DNA from: Selaginella moellendorffii
Taxonomy: Eukaryota > Plantae > Lycopodiophyta
Assembly: GCF_000143415.4 (NCBI RefSeq)
Contig: NW_003314318.1
Coordinates: forward strand, 959,457-1,023,456
Length of the DNA: 64,000 bases
Reading direction: 5' to 3'
Below are positions 4,312-29,739 of the stretch, piece after piece. Positions within the stretch are counted from its first letter, which is position 1; each line of letters starts with the position of its first letter. The translations under genes and the position numbers were made by a program. The notes under the pieces are model-generated. The model saw only the letters and a program-made list of their open reading frames with translations, ran no database searches and had not been told where the DNA came from.

Positions 4312-5799
4312 CTGTTGCCTGGAATATATGCTCGATTGGATCGTATCTATTGGGATTCAAGCAAAAGAGCCCAAAAAAGAATGGAAAAGAGCAAGATACT
4401 CGCCTTTTATCAAAGGAGAGAGATCATCACGAATCGGGAGAAGAAGCGCAAGAAGATTGTGCAGAGCTTCGCTTTTCTGTCTGCGTTTTGAGAGCCATAG
4501 TGCGTCATTCTTTTTCAGTGCCTGGAACTAGAATCCTTGTTAAGGCAGTTTAATTTATTAATAATCAGCCTTTCTGTCTGTGATGTAGTGGCTAAGCTAT
4601 AGTGCGTTGCTTCATTTTTAAGTTGGAGCTCGCTGAAAGAACGAACGCAAAGCTTTTCTTTAAGAAATATAAGATTCGACACCCGTGGTTGACGTTGTTA
4701 CACAAAGAGACAATGTTTTTTTGTTGTTTGGGACTTGTTCTCCACTTATAGATATTTTTATCAATTGATAAGTGCTAGCAGGATCCCCCTTTTCTCTTTG
4801 CAACACAGGATATATTATACCAAAGGCAAAAAGAGAGAGATTTAGCCGATCATCGTGTTATCTGGGAGATTTTGGCCAAATTATCTTAAAGAAAAGGGAG
4901 AAAGATTTGAGAGGAGCTCCACTACACCAATTGCGGCTCTCTGAAACTCAATCATTCCGCATTGTGCTCTGTGACCACCAGCATTTCATTTCATAGCATT
5001 TCCGGAGTTTGAGATTTGCAGCTCCCCACAAGATTACAAAGCCCACCCACACACACACACATAGCTTTCGAAAAAACTCAAGTGCCCTCGATACGATCGT
5101 GAGATCTGGCAAGTCTTGCCAGCAAAACTGTGGGAGGTCGTAAACAAGGCATCAACCGAAATGATCCTGGCATGAACCTTGGGAACTTCTCATGACCTCA
5201 AACTTATCACGGTGCATGCGCCCTGTATCAATGATACCCATATATACAATTAAGTACGCATACGCAAAACAGAAAAGCTTAGGTAAAGGCTGGACAAAAG
5301 TAAAGCGGAGGTCAACCAGCTTTTGTGCCAATTGATCGATCGCGGATACATACACTGCATGGAAGTCGATTCCAACACGCTGCTTTTTTGGGTGGCGCAG
5401 CACTAATGTGCTCGAGCACGAGCGAGGAGGACATTTAGGACAGACAAAGAACTTACGTGACAAAAAAGAAAGCGAGCAAAAGCTCTTTCGTGCTTCCTTG
5501 GAGACAACCAAAAGGAAAGGAAAAAGAAAGTTAGGGCTCATCCACAGGGACCGCCACAAACCCTAGAGAATAGAGAATATGCCCCCAATCTTCCAATAGA
5601 AAAATTCGCTTGCATTATCAACCCCAAAGAATGTCAACTATGGGGGCAAGTAAATAAGAGAGGAGATCGATCATATCATAGTGTTTGATTATTTTTTTGT
5701 ATGCCCCACGCTTAACTGTCTGGCTCCTCCACGTCATGCTCCCATGACCTCGCGTGCTAGCAATCACCATAATGCGGCGCATGCTCCCATTCGCCCTTC

Positions 5800-13571: not shown

Positions 13572-16463
13572 ATGCGAGGGAAATTGGAGGCGGGCGTCTT
13601 GGAAGCGATCAATCGCCTGGACAATGCCGCGGCGCCCAGCTCCTCCGATCGCTACGCCTCGCTCCTCCGGCAATGTGGCAAGGCGCGGGCGCTCGCGCTG
13701 GGCCGGCGCGTCCACGCAGACATGGCGCGATGGGGCGTTGGGCAGGGCCCTTTTCTCGCGAATTTCCTCATCCAGATGTATGGAAGCTGCGGCAGCATCG
13801 AGGAGGCGTGCGCAGTGTTCGAGAGAATGCCGCACAAGGAGCCACACACCTGGAACTTCATGATCCAGGCATATGCCCAGAACGGGCATCCACAACAGTC
13901 GTGGAAAACTTTCCATGCAATGCAAGGGCGAGGGATTGTGTCGTGGAATCTGCTTATCGCCGCGCTTATCAAGAACAATCTTGTTCACGAAGCAAGACAG
14001 ACGCTTGATCGCATGCCTGCGCGGGACACTGTCTCTTGGAACGCGATTATCACCGCAAATGCCCAAAGCGGGCAAATATTTGAAGCGCGCAGGGTCTTCG
14101 ACGAGACGAGGGACAGGAGTGTCGTAACTTGGAACGTGATGATTCATGCATACGCGCAAGATGGCGATTTGGATCGCGCTAGAGAGATGTTTGAATGGAT
14201 GCCGGAGAAGGACGCAGCGTCATGGAATGGGCTGATCGAGGGGTACGCGCGGAGTGGCAATCTGGAGGAGGCGAGAAAAGTGTTCGACGAAATGCCAGAG
14301 AAATCGACACTGTCATGGAACACCATCATCGCGGCATACGCACAGCGGCAAGGCTACTTGGAGCAAGCCAAGGATCTCTTCGATCGAGCTCCAAATCCGG
14401 ACGCTTTCACCTGGAACACGATGCTCTCGGCGTATGCCGCAAATGGCTACCTTTATGAGGCTTGTAAAATATTCGAGGAGAATCTCATGGGAGATCCGGT
14501 GTCGTGGAACGCTATGGTTGCAGCAAATGCGGAGAATGGGCATCTGGAGGAAGCATGGAGACTCTTCGTTCAGATGCCGAAACGGGACGAGGTGTCGTGG
14601 AACACCGTCGTGTCCGCCTACGGCCAGGACGAGAACATAAGTCACGCAAGAAAAATCTTCAAAAAAATGCCACAGTGGAACACTGTTTCATTCAATGGCT
14701 TCCTCCAAGGCCTGAGCCAGCAGTGTACCAAAGCAGGCGTCACAGCGATGGACGAAACGAAGGAAGTCTTCGCTGCAATGCCCCGCCGGGACGTGATCTC
14801 CTGGACGGTGTTCATGTCCGCCTTCTTCCACTCCCGTGATCCCACCCAAGCCGCCAAGATCTTCGACAAAATGCCGCTAAGAAGCTCCATAACCTTCACC
14901 GCTATGATCACCGGATATGCCCAACTCGAGCATCTGCTGCAAGCTCGCAAAACCTTCGATCAAATGCCTCTCAAGAATACCCACGCCGCCAACGCGATGC
15001 TCCAGGCCTACGCACTAAACGGCCGCATCGCCGACGCCACCGCAGTCTTCGCCACCATCCGTGATCGCGATACCTTCTCCTGGAACCTCCTCATCACCGC
15101 AAATGCCCAGGCCGGGGACGTCGCCCACGCTGAGAAGCTCTTCCACTCCATGCCCCGCCCGGACGTGGTGTCGAGGAACACCATGATCATGGCCTACTCG
15201 CAGCAGCCATCGCTTCTGGATCGAGCTCGCAGCCTCTTCGACTCCACCGCGAGCAAAAACGTCGTAACTTGGAACTGCATGCTCGCTGGGTACGTCGAGC
15301 ACGACCGAGATGGCGACGCTCTTCGCCTGTTCGCGGCGATGGAGCAGCAGCAGAGCTATGGCTGCCGCCCCAACCGCGTCACCTTCGTCATCGCTCTCGA
15401 CGCCTGCGCTCGTCTCGCGGCTCTTACTCAAGGCCAGAGGATCCACTCCACGCTCGCCGCCATAGACAGCGAGCTTGCATCCGACGTAGTGCTCAACACC
15501 GCTCTCATCAATCTCTACGCAAAGTGTGGCCGACTGGAGCAATCAAAATCGGTTTTTGATGCCATGGCGAGGCACGACACCGTCTCCTGGACTGCCATGC
15601 TCGCGGCGTACGCGCAAAACGGGCACCCCGGGGTGGCGGACGAGCTCTTCCTGGTGATGTGCCTCGAAGGAGTCGGGCTCGACGACGTGACGCTCGTCAG
15701 CTTGCTCGTCGCTTGCAGCCATGGCGGAACGCTGCGTCGGGGCCGGGAGAGCTTCCTCCTCGCGAGAGGCGAGTTTGGGATCGTCCCGACGATGGAGCAC
15801 TTCCTCTGCATGGTGGATCTTCTCGGGAGAGCCGGGCAGACGCAGCAGGCCGAGGAGCTCATCCAGACCATGCCTTTCGACACGGACGCCATCGCCATGC
15901 CGTGGATGTCGCTGCTGGCGGCTTGCAAGAGTCACCGGGACGAGGAGCGAGGAGCTCGAGCGGCGGAGAGGCTCTTCGTGCTGGATCCTCACGGTGCAGC
16001 TCCGTATCTCCTCCTGTCGAGCATCTACGCGGCGAGCGGGAAGAAGGACAAGGTGGCCGAGCTGAGGAAGTTGATGGAGCTGCGAGGAGTGAAGAAGGAG
16101 CCCGGTTACAGTTCCATCGAGATTGATGGAGCTCTCCACGTCTTTGTGGCTGGGGACAAGACGCATCCTCTCCAGGATCACATCCACGCCGAGCTCCAGA
16201 TGCTCGAGAGCAAGCTCGGCATCCATGGTGTCCAGGAAGAGATGGTGGCGCACCACAGCGAGAAGCTGGCGATGGCGTTTGGACTGATTGCCACACCTCC
16301 CAGAACTCCGCTGCTGGTGACCAAAAACCTCAGAGTTTGCGTCGAGTGTCACACCACGATCAAGCTCGTCTCGAGGATCGTTGGGAGGAGGATTGTTGTG
16401 CGGGACAGCGCGAGGTTTCATCACTGCGAGGATGGTGTTTGCTCCTGTGGTGACTACTGGTGA
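13572..16463 (+). CDS. PLS-class pentatricopeptide repeat protein with E and DYW domains (organellar C-to-U editing factor type), intronless, 963 aa
   Basis: Many tandem ~31-aa motifs (SWNxxIxxYAQ), PG box KKEPGYSSIE, HSEKLA and CVECH zinc ligands, and terminal CSCGDYW. Confidence 0.97.
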   Translation: MRGKLEAGVLEAINRLDNAAAPSSSDRYASLLRQCGKARALALGRRVHADMARWGVGQGPFLANFLIQMYGSCGSIEEACAVFERMPHKEPHTWNFMIQAYAQNGHPQQSWKTFHAMQGRGIVSWNLLIAALIKNNLVHEARQTLDRMPARDTVSWNAIITANAQSGQIFEARRVFDETRDRSVVTWNVMIHAYAQDGDLDRAREMFEWMPEKDAASWNGLIEGYARSGNLEEARKVFDEMPEKSTLSWNTIIAAYAQRQGYLEQAKDLFDRAPNPDAFTWNTMLSAYAANGYLYEACKIFEENLMGDPVSWNAMVAANAENGHLEEAWRLFVQMPKRDEVSWNTVVSAYGQDENISHARKIFKKMPQWNTVSFNGFLQGLSQQCTKAGVTAMDETKEVFAAMPRRDVISWTVFMSAFFHSRDPTQAAKIFDKMPLRSSITFTAMITGYAQLEHLLQARKTFDQMPLKNTHAANAMLQAYALNGRIADATAVFATIRDRDTFSWNLLITANAQAGDVAHAEKLFHSMPRPDVVSRNTMIMAYSQQPSLLDRARSLFDSTASKNVVTWNCMLAGYVEHDRDGDALRLFAAMEQQQSYGCRPNRVTFVIALDACARLAALTQGQRIHSTLAAIDSELASDVVLNTALINLYAKCGRLEQSKSVFDAMARHDTVSWTAMLAAYAQNGHPGVADELFLVMCLEGVGLDDVTLVSLLVACSHGGTLRRGRESFLLARGEFGIVPTMEHFLCMVDLLGRAGQTQQAEELIQTMPFDTDAIAMPWMSLLAACKSHRDEERGARAAERLFVLDPHGAAPYLLLSSIYAASGKKDKVAELRKLMELRGVKKEPGYSSIEIDGALHVFVAGDKTHPLQDHIHAELQMLESKLGIHGVQEEMVAHHSEKLAMAFGLIATPPRTPLLVTKNLRVCVECHTTIKLVSRIVGRRIVVRDSARFHHCEDGVCSCGDYW

Positions 16464-21039: not shown

Positions 21040-24000
21040 TCCCAATCTGAATGTTAAAAGTTTATGTACTTCACAATTATCTTTTTGAAGGTCTGAACGA
21101 ACCATTCCACCAAATCATCTGACTATGGATTATAAACACTCATGAAAGTGTGGTGTATCCCCAAGTGAGACGTCAAAATGTGAAATGCCTCAACCATAAA
21201 TATGGGATTATAATTTGAAAGAATTTGCTTCGGAAAGAAATGCTAAAACAGTATGCGATTGAGGAGGAAGTATTCAACAACAATTATAAATGTATTAGCA
21301 AGAGCATCAACTTCCACCTAACAAGTCAAATTGTCAGAAATAATAATGACATATGCATTGTCAATAATTGATCATGGAAAAGGCTTAATTAAATCAAATG
21401 CCACTAACTCAAACAAATGGGAAATTGCAAGTAACTCTAATCGTCCTTTTGTAACACAAGGGGGAGTATTATAAACTTGGCACCAAACACAACTACTCAT
21501 ATACTGGATAATATCATATCACATCTTTGGCCAATAGAAAGACTTACACATTTTCTCAGTCACACAACAATATCCCATATACTTGTCTAAAATAGGAGAA
21601 TCATGGTAACTGTGGAAAAAGTGTAAAATAAAGATTAAATGCACCACTAGCCATAAATGACTATCAGCATCCATCCCCACAAAATAAAGAAGACTGTACT
21701 TAAGGCAATATTAAGAATATAAATGCCAAAATGGCAAGTTATTATTAAGTGATATATGATTCTTAAACCTATTGCGAAGCTTTCACATCCATAGCTCAAT
21801 CTTTTGAGCCTCACAAACCTTGTCAAAAGAAGGTAAATTTTGTTTTGCATCTTGTGGATACTGAACATCAAGTATAATAACTGCCGATGGCACGAAATCC
21901 TTATCCAAAAAATCCATAGACACTAAAATAGCAAGCTTGTAAAAAATATGAAAAAAGAGCAAAGAAGGAAGACTTGAGAAAGGGCATTAGTATCAATTAT
22001 AAAACTTCTCGAGCGATGAACAACATCAAAATCATATATCTAAAACTTCAAAACCCACCAAGCAATATAACCAACAAAGTTTTTTAGCTTCAATTAATGA
22101 AGTAATTACAACATGATCACCTTTAGTAATGTTTGAGAACCTAAATATGCATAAAGTATTTTAAAACCCCGAATTGCTATTAAACACTCGTTCTTTGTCA
22201 TGGAGTAGTTCACCTCCACTGGTTGTAATTTACAGCTAATATATGTAATGAGATGGCATTGACTAGGCACACTCAAACTCTCTTGCATCAACACACCTTC
22301 AAAATTAATATTAGAAACATTCATAAACAAAATGAAAGGTCAAGTGTAATTAAGATATACTAAAACCGGAGGAGTCATCAATAGCTCTTTGAGATATATA
22401 AATGCCCATTCATAATCCACAGACTAAATGAAAGTGGCATTGATGAATTTAGCTATGCTTGTAATGGTGCAATGCAATAAAAAATATGATTAACAAAACG
22501 ATCAAGATATTGCACTTTGCCAAGAAACACTATACATCATTCACACACTTCAAAATAGAGAACTTTAAAATAACCACAAATTTGTTAAAATCAACTTGCA
22601 AACCTTTACAAGAAATATGATACCCAAAATAAGTTGTGTTTTTGGACCTAAATATACATTTCAACTGCTTTAGCTTTAAACCAACTTCCTATAACCGACC
22701 TAACACCTTATGAACATCATGGACGTTNNNNNNNNNNNNNNNNNNNNNNNNNNNNNNNNNNNNNNNNNNNNNNNNNNNNNNNNNNNNNNNNNNNNNNNNN
22801 NNNNNNNNNNNNNNNNNNNNNNNNNNNGCAAATAGCATCACCAAAAATTTGTATAAACAAAGTAATGTACAAAATGCAATTTTATGAATATCTTCCTCGA
22901 CCATAGGAAGAAGGTACACATTTAGGATTGTAATTTCATTTAACAAATGATAATCGATGCAAAAACAAATACTCTTATTATGCTTTATCACAAGATGAAG
23001 GTCATATGCCTAAGGACTTTTTGACTTTTGAATAACACTTTTTCCAACATCTCTTTAATATTTACACATAAAATCTTGATCTCTTTTGATGACTAACAGC
23101 AAATAAAAACCTTGATTACACAAGCATTCCCAGTTAGAATAGGATAACATATTGCAATCTTGGCCCCAAATGATAAGTCAAATTCAAAGAGATCGATATA
23201 CTCTTTCATGATACTGTAAATTACTACAACACAAAGACCATCAAAGGGATTTGAAGAGGGGAATAGAGGAATAAGACGGAAATATAAGAGAAAGTAATGG
23301 AGAGACAAAAGTGATAGAAATAAATATAGAAGTAAAAGGATAAAAAAAAACAGAAGTAAAAAGAATGGAAGAAATATAAATAAATATGAAACAAGGGGGA
23401 GAAGCCTCAAATCACACTTGACATAATTGCGCCATAACCAATCAATACCAAGGATAAGGTCAAAAGCTTGACTCAACACCATCTGTAACAATTGCAACTC
23501 GAGCTCAAGATCACCCACATGCAAAACTAAGTTTGCCTCATCTTATACACATACATGCATATAGCCATTGCCATAAAAAATGAAAACTAAGATGCAAATG
23601 TAAATGGTAATGTGTGGTAATAGGTTGAACAATAAAAGATAAATTTGAGCCTAGGAGACCTCTTCTTATAAAAATAAGCTTAGAAAGTAAACACTAGATG
23701 AATTGGTGTCAAATGAACCTTTTGATGATACTCCTAAAAGAAAGATGAAAGAGTTATTGATTTATTTGCAAAAGAACCCTCCATTACTTACATAACTCCT
23801 TATTTTCTAGAAGCATCTTATTGTTTAGACTTTCCACTACAACTACACCAATAGAATATTATTGATGCCAAAGTTTCCACCCAAGAAATGGAAGTTGTCA
23901 CCAACAACACCAATAAGTATAATTAACTTCATCACACGCCAGGTCCTCACCCTTATTTTTGAACTTAGGCAATAATAATATCAATCTCCATTAAAACAGG

Positions 24001-24975: not shown

Positions 24976-27002
24976 ATATATAGATACATAAACACACACA
25001 TAAAGAGATTTTAAAAAAAAAATTGTATAAAATTATTGATTTTAGGCATTTGCTCCAGATTCAACAAATAACATCTGTCCAATTAGAGGGTAATTGTCAA
25101 AGGGTTAACCACATCTTAGTGAATAGTTGTATTGGTGTTTTCTTTTATCCAATAGGAAGTTGCCAATTACTTGAGGCAAAAGAAAATGTTATGACATATG
25201 TTACATGCAATGTGTTGATTGGCATTAACACTCAACCTTTTGCAATGTAAATTCATTATCTCATATATGATCTTTATAGTTCCTTCCAAGGAATTTAATA
25301 GTTTTTCTTAAGAAAATATATAATTATAGTTTTTTTCCCAATTCTTTTTTCAAAGTGGCATATAATATCTATTGTTTTGACACTATTCAAATTTAATTTT
25401 CAATGTAAATTTTCAATTTTCAAAATTATGACAATCAAAATATATATTATTGCTCAGCATATGCTGTTTAGTTAGGAAACACTGTTTTGATTGTTATAGT
25501 TTTGTTACATTGAAAACTAAATTGGAATATTATCAAAATAACAAATATTATATTCCACATTTGAAAAAAGAATTAATGAAGTAATTATAAGCATGTATTT
25601 CCTCAAAGAAAACTATCAAAATCTTTAGAAGAAATTTCAAGATCCCAAATGATACTCGAATATATTTAAAATACTAAAATTTTAAGAAACTTCATATGCA
25701 AAACAGAAAAAAGTAACAAAAAACTTTCTGAGAATAATGTTTTATAGTTATTAGAATATTAATATAGTTAGTACACTCCTAGATTAAAAAAACAAGAATT
25801 ACTAAAAATAAATTTTTAATTAGATTTTTAATGTAAAGTATGTTTTACTTGGAATATAAATAAATTTATAATCCTAAAATGTTAAGAAAACTAATATATT
25901 ACATTCCAGACTCAATAAAAAGTAAAGAAAAAATACTAAGATTTATTATCATTAATTTAGAGAAGCATTATTTATTTATTATGTGTTTAATTAGAATATG
26001 AATAAATATATAGCTAGGATTTGAAAAAAATATATATTACTCAGATCAAAACAAAGTCTAACTTAGAAATAAAAAATTGTATGTAGGCTTAAAGAAATAG
26101 AATCTAAATAAATTTGTCTAACATTATGCAATATAGTTATTAGCAAAGAATTACTTAGCCATATGTTTTACTTAGAATATAAAAAACTAAAATTTTAAGA
26201 ACACTAATACTACTACCCATACCCAAGTAAAACTAAGGAAAGTATTACATAAAAAAATATTATTAATATATGTTAGATACAAAATATAAATTCAAAACCA
26301 TAGAACTAATAAACTATGCTAAAAGNNNNNNNNNNNNNNNNNNNNNNNNNNNNNNNNNNNNNNNNNNNNNNNNNNNNNNNNNNNNNNNNNNNNNNNNNNN
26401 NNNNNNNNNNNNNNNNNNNNNNNNNATCTATATAGATTTGTTAAATTGCCTGATCAATACATTAGTACAAACAAAGAATTGCCTTTATCAATTGGTTAGG
26501 GGCTACTCTATCTATCAACCAAACCATATACATAAAGAAGAAAACTGTATGACAGAGTAAGTGCCATCTTAGTTATATTAATTGATTCAGGAAGTTTATC
26601 AAAAAAATTGGGCCAGCAAGAAACATTTTTTGTCGCATGCTGTCCATGGCTTGTGCCCCAGCACCCAGTCTCCCATATCTGTGCCTACAAATTCAAATGG
26701 TAAACACTCACTAGAGAATTAAAAGCAATTGGAAATTGGTCAATTTCCCATGGCACTTTGGCTGTTGGAAAGCCATAGCATACTTGGTGCTCCACTACTC
26801 TAGAGTGTTGGTTATAGTGCTCCACTGCTAATCCAATCCTAGGGAAAGAAGTGAGAACTTTTGCAAAAAAGATGGTTAAGCAAGCACATGTTTTGGAGCT
26901 CCTAGGCCTCTATCTCTAGTGTTGGATGGCTACTAACCACCACAAACATCCCCATGCTCGAGTAGGGTCTTTTGCTTCTCCACAATCCCTAGAGCTCCTG
27001 GT

Positions 27003-27770
27003 TTGAAGTGGAATTGTAAAAATTGCAATACCACAAGATCTTTTAGAATTAATATTTTATTTGCAAATAATTATCTCACATTTGCTCAAATGCTTAGAGT
27101 GATGTATTGTTTATGCATTAAAATGCCACAAGATCAAACTTGTATTGAGTGTAGTATTAAAAGTGAGCATACGACAACAAATTAGTACAACTTTTATCGT
27201 AATATTTAATTACAATGAGGTAGTTAAAAAATTGGTGGTCAATAAAAAATTGTGGAAATTGATGAAAGTAAGTTTAGTAAGAAAAAATATAATCATGGTA
27301 GAAAAGTAGAAGGTTAATGGGTTTTTGGAGGAATTAAAAGTGATTCAGATCCAATGTTTATGGTTTGGGTTGCTATTGCACAAACTTTAATTGATATTTT
27401 TTATATATATATATTGAACCAGGTAAGTTCTATTTCTATTATTATTCTTAACTAATAATTATATTTAATTATTTAGGAAGAATTTATATATAGTGATTGT
27501 TGGGCTAGTTATGATTTAGAGTGGTTGAATCAATTAAACTTCACTCATTATACAGTCAACCACTCCCAAAATTTTGTTAATCCTATGATTGGAGTTCATA
27601 CAAATTATATTGAATTGACATAGAATGCAGTGAAAAGATCCCTTCCTCGCTATGGTACAACAAAAGGATTATACAGCTATTACTTTCAAGAATATATTTG
27701 GCCAAAAATATATATTGAAAGAAAGGAAATTTCATTTAATATTCTATGTAGTCATATTAAGCTATACAAT
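27003..27770 (+). mobile_element. Merlin / IS1595(ISXO2)-like DDE transposase pseudogene with a spliceosomal-type intron
   Basis: WNCKNC..SFR..F...L, *YNFYR, KIVEIDESKFSKKKYNHGRKVEG*WVFGGI, IEPG|G, SDCWASY, HYTVNHSQNFVNPMIGVHTNYIE and YFQEYIW. GT-AG intron at 27423-27476. Contains stops and frameshifts. Confidence 0.88.
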
Positions 27771-28240
27771 CAGAATAATGCTGTTATAGTAGAATAAATA
27801 GTATATTTTATTTTATACTTTTAAATAATTAAAAATAATATACTAGAACAATCTTTAATTTATAGTAATGAAATGGCATGCCTATGTAACCAATAAGTTG
27901 GCATGCAAATCTAAATAAGCAAATAATGGGGACCTATTTGTGTGGACTTATTTTTATATTGGGGGTCTCTGCCACTAGTCCTCTACCACCTTTATATTAC
28001 ATATTTCATTTCGTGTCGGTTAAATTTATTGGGTTTATGAGAGGGATTTAACTAGAACAAAAGGCATTTATAAAGTGCGCTTTAAGTGGGGGTTAAGAGG
28101 GGCAATTGCAGCCATTGGTGCAGTGGGGTGGTTGACTGGTGGGGTAGTTTTCATGCCACGACTACTCTATGAAACATTTGAGTTCACTCAATTATACTAG
28201 GCCTTATGATAGACACGTAGATGTTATCCACAGCCATGAA

Positions 28241-29739
28241 ATGGAACTCTATCATCATCGTATAGATGTGGTCGTGTTCCTCCTCTTTGTCTCTCTCATT
28301 TCCTCCAGTGGAGTTCCAATCCCATCTCGACCAGTGCAATGCAACGTGAGAGACTATGGAGCTCTTGGCAATGGATCAACGCTCGAAACCTCCTCAATCC
28401 AGTCAGCAATCAATGCTTGCCACTCTCGCAGCAACAAACTCGGCTCCAAGAGTGTCGTCTGGGTTCCTCCAGGCTCCTACCTCACTGGAACACTCTTCCT
28501 CAGATCCAACATGACGCTCCACATCGACCATGGCGCCAAGATCTTGGGAAGCTCCAGGCAGATGGACTATCCTCCCGAGAAGGATCGATGGTATGTGATT
28601 CTTGCCGAGGGCGTAGAGAATGTGGGGATCACTGGCGGTGGTGAGGTCAACGGCCAGAGCTCCAAGTTTGTGGTGAGATATGATCCAAAGAAGAACATCA
28701 TGACGAGCTGGAATGTCACTGGGAACTGCCTAGGCGATGAATGCCGCCCCAGATTGGTGGGATTTCTACGCTCGACCAAGATTCGCGTCTGGAACATCGA
28801 TCTCCGGCAGCCGGCATACTGGTGGTAAGAACTACGTTGACTAAACGTTTTACTATAGTTGACTATATTTTGACCATAGTTGACCGAGCTGTGACTTTGC
28901 GCAGCTTGCATCTGGTCAACTCGAACTTCATACACATCCACGACATCTCAATCTTGGGCGATTTCGACACGCCCAACAACGATGGTATCGACGTAGATGG
29001 ATCCAACAACACGGTGATCGAGCGCTGCCGGATTGACACGGGCGACGATGCGATCTGCCCAAAGACGACGTACGGACCGCTCGTCAACCTCACCGTCCGG
29101 GACTGCTGGGTACGGACAAAGTCGTGCGGGGTCAAGCTCGGCAGCGCCACCTTCTTCGACTTCCGCCACCTTCGATTCTCAAACTTGATCATCGTTGATT
29201 CGCATCGCGGACTTGGGATCCAGCTCCGGGACGCCGGGAGTGTCTACGACGTGATCTTCGCCAACATTGTAGTGTCCACTCGATACTATGATCCGTCGTG
29301 GTGGGGGAGAGCCGAGCCGATCTATGTGACGGTGTGTCCCAGAGACGAATTCACGCTGGTGGGATCGGTCCACTCGATCGAGTTTCGCAACATCACTGCT
29401 CGATCCGAGAATGGGATCTTTCTCGCGGCGTCTGAGAATGGAGCTGTGATTCACAGCGTGAAACTTGTGGACGTGGATTTGAAAATCGAGAGGTGGACGA
29501 GCTATAGCGGAGATGGAGGGATGCAGGACTTTAGACCGGGATGCCAGGGTCTTATCTCCCACGACAAGAGATCGGGAATGTTTGTCCAGAGGGCGCATGG
29601 CCTGTCGCTACAGAACGTCAGCTTTACGTGGGTGACGAGCAGTGGCGGCGGGGAAGAAGTTCCTATTGAATTTGGTTCCAGGACACCGGAGGACAGTATT
29701 TCTCTCGTCAACTTTGCGAACGATTTCCTGGCTTCATAG
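28241..29739 (+). CDS. Glycoside hydrolase family 28 (polygalacturonase-like) secreted protein, 2 exons (intron 28825-28904)
   Basis: Signal-like N-terminus, NVRDYGALGNG, VPPGSYLTGTLFLRSN, TPNNDGID and TGDDAICPK. The alternative upstream ATG is at 28169. Confidence 0.92.

Follow-up and report, generated by a model that had tools for sequence, protein, structure and literature searches.

A decayed, 5'-truncated Merlin transposon copy with a putative 54-nt intron upstream of a GH28 gene in Selaginella moellendorffii

Background

How does a sequence with the catalytic motifs of a bacterial-type IS1595 transposase come to lie beside a plant gene, and is the short AT-rich segment that interrupts it an intron? 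These questions are raised by a locus in a 64-kb window of the Selaginella moellendorffii genome (the window is the whole stretch of DNA that was analyzed), where the initial annotation placed a Merlin/IS1595-family DDE transposase relic. Merlin elements carry terminal inverted repeats of 24-462 bp and are flanked by 8-9 bp target-site duplications. An active element would encode a single transposase in which a zinc ribbon and helix-turn-helix at the N-terminus precede a DDE domain of RNase-H fold at the C-terminus. This enzyme would bind the terminal inverted repeats (5'-GG...CC-3'), excise the element and reinsert it, duplicating 8-9 bp of target. For the locus described here, such a mechanism would follow from Merlin family membership, and its anatomy, homology and location in plant DNA are direct observations.

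The annotation implied novelty for a Merlin element in a land plant, which does not hold. Repbase lists one S. moellendorffii Merlin element, Merlin-1_Smo (PMC8101967, Lopes et al. 2021), and the same paper describes Merlin as genuine, non-contaminant and degenerate in S. moellendorffii, S. kraussiana and S. tamariscina. It reports that active copies are absent from Selaginella and that blastp has no matches in Streptophyta, and nowhere does it speak of an intron, exon or splicing (PMC8101967).

Identification of the transposase relic

When proteins that pass the Pfam PF12762 model are compared with the whole 64-kb window by tblastn, they match a single place, and many of them do so with E from 3.8e-37 to 1e-25. 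P0033 aligns over its residues 39-311 (E = 3.8e-37), P0039 at 1e-34 and P0013 at 2e-29. The alignments are colinear across approximately 230-270 residues, from the second CxxC to the C-terminus, with 31-47% identity, and they bring the D-D-E residues and the associated K of the relic into register, which bears out the assignment to the Merlin/IS1595 family. About 265 codons of transposase are encoded by positions 27003-27934. The annotated end at 27770 is too short, as the coding sequence has its stop codon at 27795 and the element ends at about 27934. No second copy of the relic was found inside the window by tblastn or blastn.

We consider it very probable that 27003-27934 on the forward strand is one dead, 5'-truncated Merlin DNA-transposon copy of S. 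moellendorffii that lies upstream of a GH28 gene. It probably belongs to the family that Repbase calls Merlin-1_Smo. The features of the locus are listed below with the evidence for each; X19 is a DNA run from the same organism, with 262 contigs aligned to the window.

26326-26425, unstranded: assembly gap of 100 N, 577 bp upstream of the relic (sequence).
27003-27934, forward strand: decayed, 5'-truncated Merlin (IS1595/IS1016-like) copy, very probable (AT-rich block, tblastn, X19 contig pile-up).
27003-27182, forward strand: zinc-ribbon and helix-turn-helix-like N-terminal remnant, second CxxC at 27015-27026 (WNCKNCN..S.R aligns with WKCNSCN of P0039 and WRCRKN of P0033).
27183, 27207, 27216, 27225, 27243, 27315 and 27621, forward strand: seven in-frame exon stops (translation).
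27228-27422, forward strand: DDE domain part 1 (KIGG..VEIDESKF..KYNHGR..WVFGG..IEPG) with the first catalytic D (homologue alignments, translations).
27423-27476, forward strand: putative intron, 54 nt, phase 1 (homologue gap, splice signals, spacing).
27477-27797, forward strand: DDE domain part 2 and C-terminus, with an extra T at 27483 and the natural stop at 27795-27797 (homologue alignments).
27798-27934, forward strand: 3' non-coding end with probable terminus ...GGGGACC (CC end; similarity to other copies stops at 27923-27926).
28149-29739, forward strand: GH28 polygalacturonase, start codon 28169, intron 28824-28903 (PF12708, PF00295, spliced contigs).

The initial annotation proposed a Pfam search as a check, and its outcome is mixed. 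Pfam and NCBIfam scans were run on five stop-free pieces individually. The 48-residue piece from 27477-27620 has sub-threshold matches to PF12762 (E = 0.035, 14.6 bits versus a cutoff of 27) and to the NCBIfam IS1595 model NF033547 (E = 6.7e-4, 19.6 bits), and the other pieces have no family match in either scan. Proteins positive for PF12762 nevertheless align over the whole domain. Because the stop-free pieces fall below the thresholds of the family models, membership rests on this pairwise alignment to members.

Searching phmmer with the same 48-residue piece returns 551 proteins at E <= 1e-3; a pseudoscorpion, a sea slug and a cockroach supply the top named matches, which are annotated as 'ISXO2-like transposase domain' proteins. 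Pfam scans of six phmmer relatives, four of which are full-length, put every one above the PF12762 gathering score (52-73 bits). In the ESM Atlas, the piece finds PF12762 clusters at 0.92, and the nearest clusters are mostly bacterial. The best 150 representative relatives include no Selaginella protein and are all at most 47% identical, in agreement with the published blastp blank in Streptophyta. The annotated 'ISXO2-like' models of Elysia chlorotica (L002, RQTK01001207.1, 3001-6708) and Cordylochernes (P0001 and P0002) span two to five domain repeats; these models are several tandem or neighboring Merlin copies and not single transposases.

Catalytic motifs and decay of the copy

Translation of the three forward phases of 26300-28300 puts every motif quoted in the initial annotation where it had been reported and in the single reading phase of base 26427. 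The stretch LKWNCKNCN begins at 27003, with CKNC at 27015-27026. The segment KIVEIDESKFSKKKYNHGRKVEG spans 27246-27314, VEIDESKF..KYNHGR occupies 27252-27302 and WVFGG lies at 27318-27332. Downstream of the 54-nt segment, ..IYSDCWASY..VNHSQNFVNPMIGVHTNYIE falls within 27477-27620, with SDCWASY at 27492-27512 and VNHSQNFVNP..GVHTNYIE at 27555-27614. The catalytic residues are D at 27261-27263, D at 27495-27497 and E at 27612-27614, followed by K at 27633-27635 (E+7), and all four align with those of P0013, P0033 and P0039. The D, D and E codons and the K at E+7 are thus kept although the gene is broken elsewhere.

The motifs had been described as a complete ISXO2-like DDE signature. This is accurate for the D, D, E and K and for the second CxxC; the copy lacks the first CxxC, its 5' end and the 5' inverted repeat. 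Homologues extend about 60-70 residues further upstream, and the first CxxC is absent or survives as a doubtful vestige at 26940-26960. The relic consequently lacks the two CxxC pairs that would precede the DDE domain as an N-terminal zinc-binding unit, which reflects truncation of this copy and not a property of the family.

The coding phase contains seven exon stops and two frame-shifting indels, and three further stops lie inside the putative intron. The TAG at 27183 is TGG on the other haplotype and W or Y in homologues, the TAA at 27315 is CAA in an X19 contig and Q in P0033, and the TAG at 27621 aligns to a W of homologues. These three stops are consistent with C>T or G>A transitions, the first two being visible in other copies and the third deduced from the homologues. 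One indel (+2 or -1) falls in the T/TA run at 27398-27415. The other is the T at 27483, which is missing in all three X19 contigs that cover it (depth 183.9 of 183.9). With no 5' inverted repeat, about 60-70 N-terminal codons lost, and the stops and frameshifts, the copy at 27003-27934 is predicted to be incapable of transposition.

A decayed Merlin from a 104-kb contig with GC of 0.36 (L001; ENA ERZ25073694 ctg130146, 4580-5420) is the closest relative over the C-terminal half, where it is 47% identical to the relic. Both copies have a stop in place of one and the same W codon (EHTTVN*YNF in L001, EHTTTN*YNF in the relic), and this coincidence is probably parallel decay of TGG.

Ends and composition of the element

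The relic is distinctly AT-rich. GC is 0.27 over 27003-27422, 0.13 over 27423-27476, 0.28 over 27477-27797 and 0.20 over 27798-27926, compared with 0.45 directly upstream and 0.43 directly downstream. An X19 contig departs into a different flank at 27926. Merlin termini have the form 5'-GG...CC-3' (PMC8101967), and the ...GGGGACC at 27928-27934 is likely to be the 3' terminus of the element. The reverse complement of this 3' end has no partner in the 64-kb window with up to three mismatches permitted, and no convincing inverted repeat pair for the relic was found within the window. The copy is consequently read as 5'-truncated at about 27003, with the element's 5' junction, and hence one side of any target-site duplication, lost. 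An element start at 26940, to which the P0033 alignment could be extended, was rejected as likely chance, given the change in GC from 0.45 to 0.27 across 27003; in addition, no X19 contig from another copy (at least 90% identity) lies on 26878-26990.

The 54-nt segment as a putative intron

A 54-nt GTAAG...TTTAG intron had been placed within IEPG|G by the initial annotation. A segment of this kind does occupy 27423-27476. It has a GTAAGT donor, a CTAAT branch-like motif at 27452-27456 (about 20 nt before its end) and a TTTAG acceptor, and its length is a multiple of three, with read-through meeting a stop. Every aligned homologue is gapped by 15-19 residues between '..PG' and 'I.SD'. The splice itself is a reconstruction that involves two flanking indels: IEPG is in the phase of 26426, and TLIDIFYIYI upstream and IYSDCW downstream are both in the phase of 26427, so two small indels must flank the putative intron. 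If the T at 27483 is omitted, a 27422|27477 splice would read ..IEPG RIIYSDCWASY.. with the Gly codon split as G|GA. This reading places PG at D-7/D-6, where 64 of 151 homologues have it too (in most others, G is likewise at D-6), and it matches the spacing of P0013 from TL to SD. An indel-free splice, ..YILNQ|EEFIYSD.., was dropped in favor of ..YIEPG|RIIYSD.. on the basis of spacing and of the T that is missing in other copies.

We regard 27423-27476 as a likely spliceosomal intron, a reading that draws on the splice signals, length and spacing in the DNA. Its size would suit the host, as intron lengths in S. moellendorffii have a fungus-like short distribution (PMC6157073). In this model, one 54-nt intron would split the PG motif's Gly codon, just ahead of the second catalytic Asp, in the transposase gene of the family.

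The main competing explanation is that the 54 nt are a family- or copy-specific insertion, or a product of AT-rich slippage, that arose after the gene had died. The spliced reading requires two extra indels in the relic copy, and the relic is AT-rich throughout, so that GT, AG and CTAAT are not rare in it. However, a perfect donor together with CTAAT about 20 nt ahead of the acceptor and a length divisible by three would be harder to reconcile with slippage, as would the fact that excision of the 54 nt and the extra T yields the spacing of the homologues. The extra T is also private to the relic (absent from 3/3 contigs of other copies), and the GC of the segment is about half that of the adjoining coding parts. 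The segment is skipped by none of the X19 DNA contigs. The mapped runs contain no RNA contig of the relic copy itself; a single RNA-like contig aligns to the relic, over 27546-27708, and it stems from another copy. Weighing these points, we judge an insertion or slippage to be improbable, though it is the strongest rival to the intron reading. The contig in question, a 163-nt X7 sequence guessed to be RNA and labelled organism B, matches the relic with 90% identity and could be low-level transcription or DNA carry-over.

The annotation also proposed that the position of the intron be compared with that in other Merlins. The comparison finds no intron at the PG site in three relatives, namely L001, the Elysia locus L002 and the uninterrupted P0033 ORF in L003. 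This is compatible with an insertion; if the intron is real, then it would be lineage-specific, because all three relatives are intron-free at the site.

Relationships and origin of the family

Merlin elements of animals and protists, reportedly described by Feschotte in 2004, are represented here by P0013, P0033 and P0039. The relic shares with them the zinc ribbon CxxC, an HTH-like region and a PF12762 DDE domain, as well as the motifs VEIDE, WVFGG, PG-x5-D, VNHS.NF and HTN.IE-x6-K, within the 31-47% identity noted above. Unlike them, it is dead, 5'-truncated and very AT-rich, and its 54-nt interruption has no counterpart in the three intron-free relatives. The catalytic domain family and the D-D-E-K pattern are also those of the bacterial IS1595 family, IS1016 group (NF033547, PF12762), but the profile match of the relic is weak (19.6 bits), its host is a eukaryote, and it has an intron-like interruption and is multi-copy in a plant. 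The closest counterparts are Merlin-1_Smo together with those copies that Lopes et al. describe, which come from the same species and assembly (GCA_000143415.2), belong to the same superfamily and are degenerate, and the relic likewise has no sign of activity. The published copies have a truncated DDE_Tnp_IS1595 domain (PMC8101967), whereas in the relic colinearity extends to the end of the DDE domain and the truncation affects the N-terminus.

These relationships bear on whether Selaginella recently acquired the family horizontally, with an animal or a microbial eukaryote as the source. Among named proteins, those of arthropods and molluscs are the best relatives, the element is far more AT-rich than the host genes, its copies have diverged by just 1-10%, and land plants otherwise have almost no Merlin (PMC8101967). 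On the other hand, the closest proteins are far too distant at 31-47% identity for naming a donor, and most relatives are metagenome or Logan proteins and hence carry no taxonomic signal. Merlin has also been reported from three Selaginella species (PMC8101967), and the putative intron is of a host-typical size. Recent horizontal transfer thus appears unlikely, and more so than an insertion origin of the 54-nt segment.

We tentatively propose a history, improbable but possible, that departs from the published picture of the Selaginella family as solely ancient truncated debris. Merlin may have amplified recently in Selaginella, where many copies are 95-99% alike, and intact intron-bearing copies of about 1.5 kb may exist. 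The 54-nt intron could have been gained after the element entered the lineage, a suggestion made because the three non-plant relatives do not have it.

The neighboring GH28 gene

Spliced contigs of the GH28 gene in three runs start at 28149 and skip 28824-28903, an 80-nt GT-AG intron, so that the mRNA starts at or upstream of 28149. The best database relative of this gene is S. moellendorffii SELMODRAFT_437695 (96% identity). A RefSeq model from the other haplotype, XP_002961289.2 (813 aa), begins some 5 kb farther upstream and may be too long.

The relic occupies positions 215-1150 bp upstream of where the GH28 mRNA begins, and possibly domesticated Merlin-related sequences exist in other eukaryotes (PMC8101967), which could suggest that it is a Merlin-derived host gene or a regulatory module of GH28. 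We consider this very improbable. Seven stops and two frameshifts interrupt its frame, no RNA contig of the copy was found, and the other haplotype has lost 27230-28143 yet retains an intact and annotated GH28 gene. Nothing suggests any activity of the relic beside GH28.

Haplotypes, copy number and contamination

Scaffold GL377622.1 of S. moellendorffii GCA_000143415.2 matches the window at 100% identity. The second haplotype is represented by scaffold GL377565.1 (L007), which is 96.8% identical over GH28 and the next genes. Window positions 26947-27229, which comprise the relic start and its upstream junction, are present on GL377565.1 with 85% identity, and there 107 bp separate the relic start from the resumption of GH28 homology. 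The remainder of the relic and 217 further bases (27230-28143, 914 bp) are replaced on L007 by 106 unrelated bases (14858-14963). Intergenic identity between the haplotypes is 85-91%, compared with 96.8% over the genes. Opposite window positions 26947-26965, the second haplotype has about 12 kb of extra sequence upstream of GH28 (L007 2553-14568), in which the five largest ORFs have no Pfam match.

Most of the X19 contigs pile up on 26991-27926 with 90-99% identity, at a summed depth of 150-1050 versus 22 on the neighboring single-copy gene. No X19 contig bridges the relic and GH28, and 28008-28120 is uncovered by this run. X19 appears to carry the other allele around 27230-28143, because contig homology begins at 28144 as it does in L007. 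The sequence of this interval on the window haplotype rests on a single assembly (GL377622.1).

The annotation held that the locus is land-plant DNA and not bacterial contamination, and it proposed a check of contiguity with GH28; the two scaffolds support both the plant origin and the contiguity. The relic adjoins GH28 in two separately assembled scaffolds with no intervening N, and no N run separates it from 36 kb of plant genes, which excludes contamination or a chimeric join for practical purposes. Together, the many X19 contigs, the scaffold match and the relic start on the second haplotype indicate an endogenous multi-copy family. The weakest of the alternatives, that the relic is bacterial IS1595 DNA introduced by contamination or by a chimeric join after an N gap, might be entertained in view of the 100-N gap upstream, the mostly bacterial Atlas clusters and a base composition unlike the flanks, but it is exceedingly improbable for a sequence whose first 280 bp recur at the corresponding position of the other haplotype scaffold and which has many copies, 90-99% identical, in another DNA run from this organism, contains seven stops and a 54-nt GT-AG interruption in place of an uninterrupted transposase ORF, and scores a mere 19.6 bits against the bacterial NCBIfam profile (versus 50-89 bits for eukaryotic proteins), and Selaginella Merlin copies have been judged non-contaminant before (PMC8101967).

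A decayed LTR-retrotransposon fragment lies at 22109-22330 on the reverse strand (RT_RNaseH PF17917, E 3e-9), beside an N gap at 22728-22827. This fragment and the Merlin relic occur in a common AT-rich intergenic block at 18-28 kb.

Discussion

The relic is an ordinary repeat of an already known type, and its detection is a correct re-discovery, because Merlin-1_Smo in Repbase and the 2021 survey (PMC8101967) precede it. As read from the DNA, two features would go beyond that survey: the putative intron, and the full extent of the DDE domain combined with N-terminal truncation. The copy also documents ordinary decay, in the form of transitions that hit W and Q codons, slippage in a T/TA run and a deletion on one haplotype.

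The relic alone matters little, and the questions of interest concern the family: is the putative intron spliced, and are there intact copies, at odds with the 2021 survey? If intact intron-bearing copies of the kind that we tentatively propose are real, then they would represent a Merlin lineage unique among those known from land plants in being potentially live. Affirmative answers would be of modest interest to transposon specialists, as they would provide a case of intron gain in a prokaryote-derived transposase and of the persistence of Merlin in one plant lineage.
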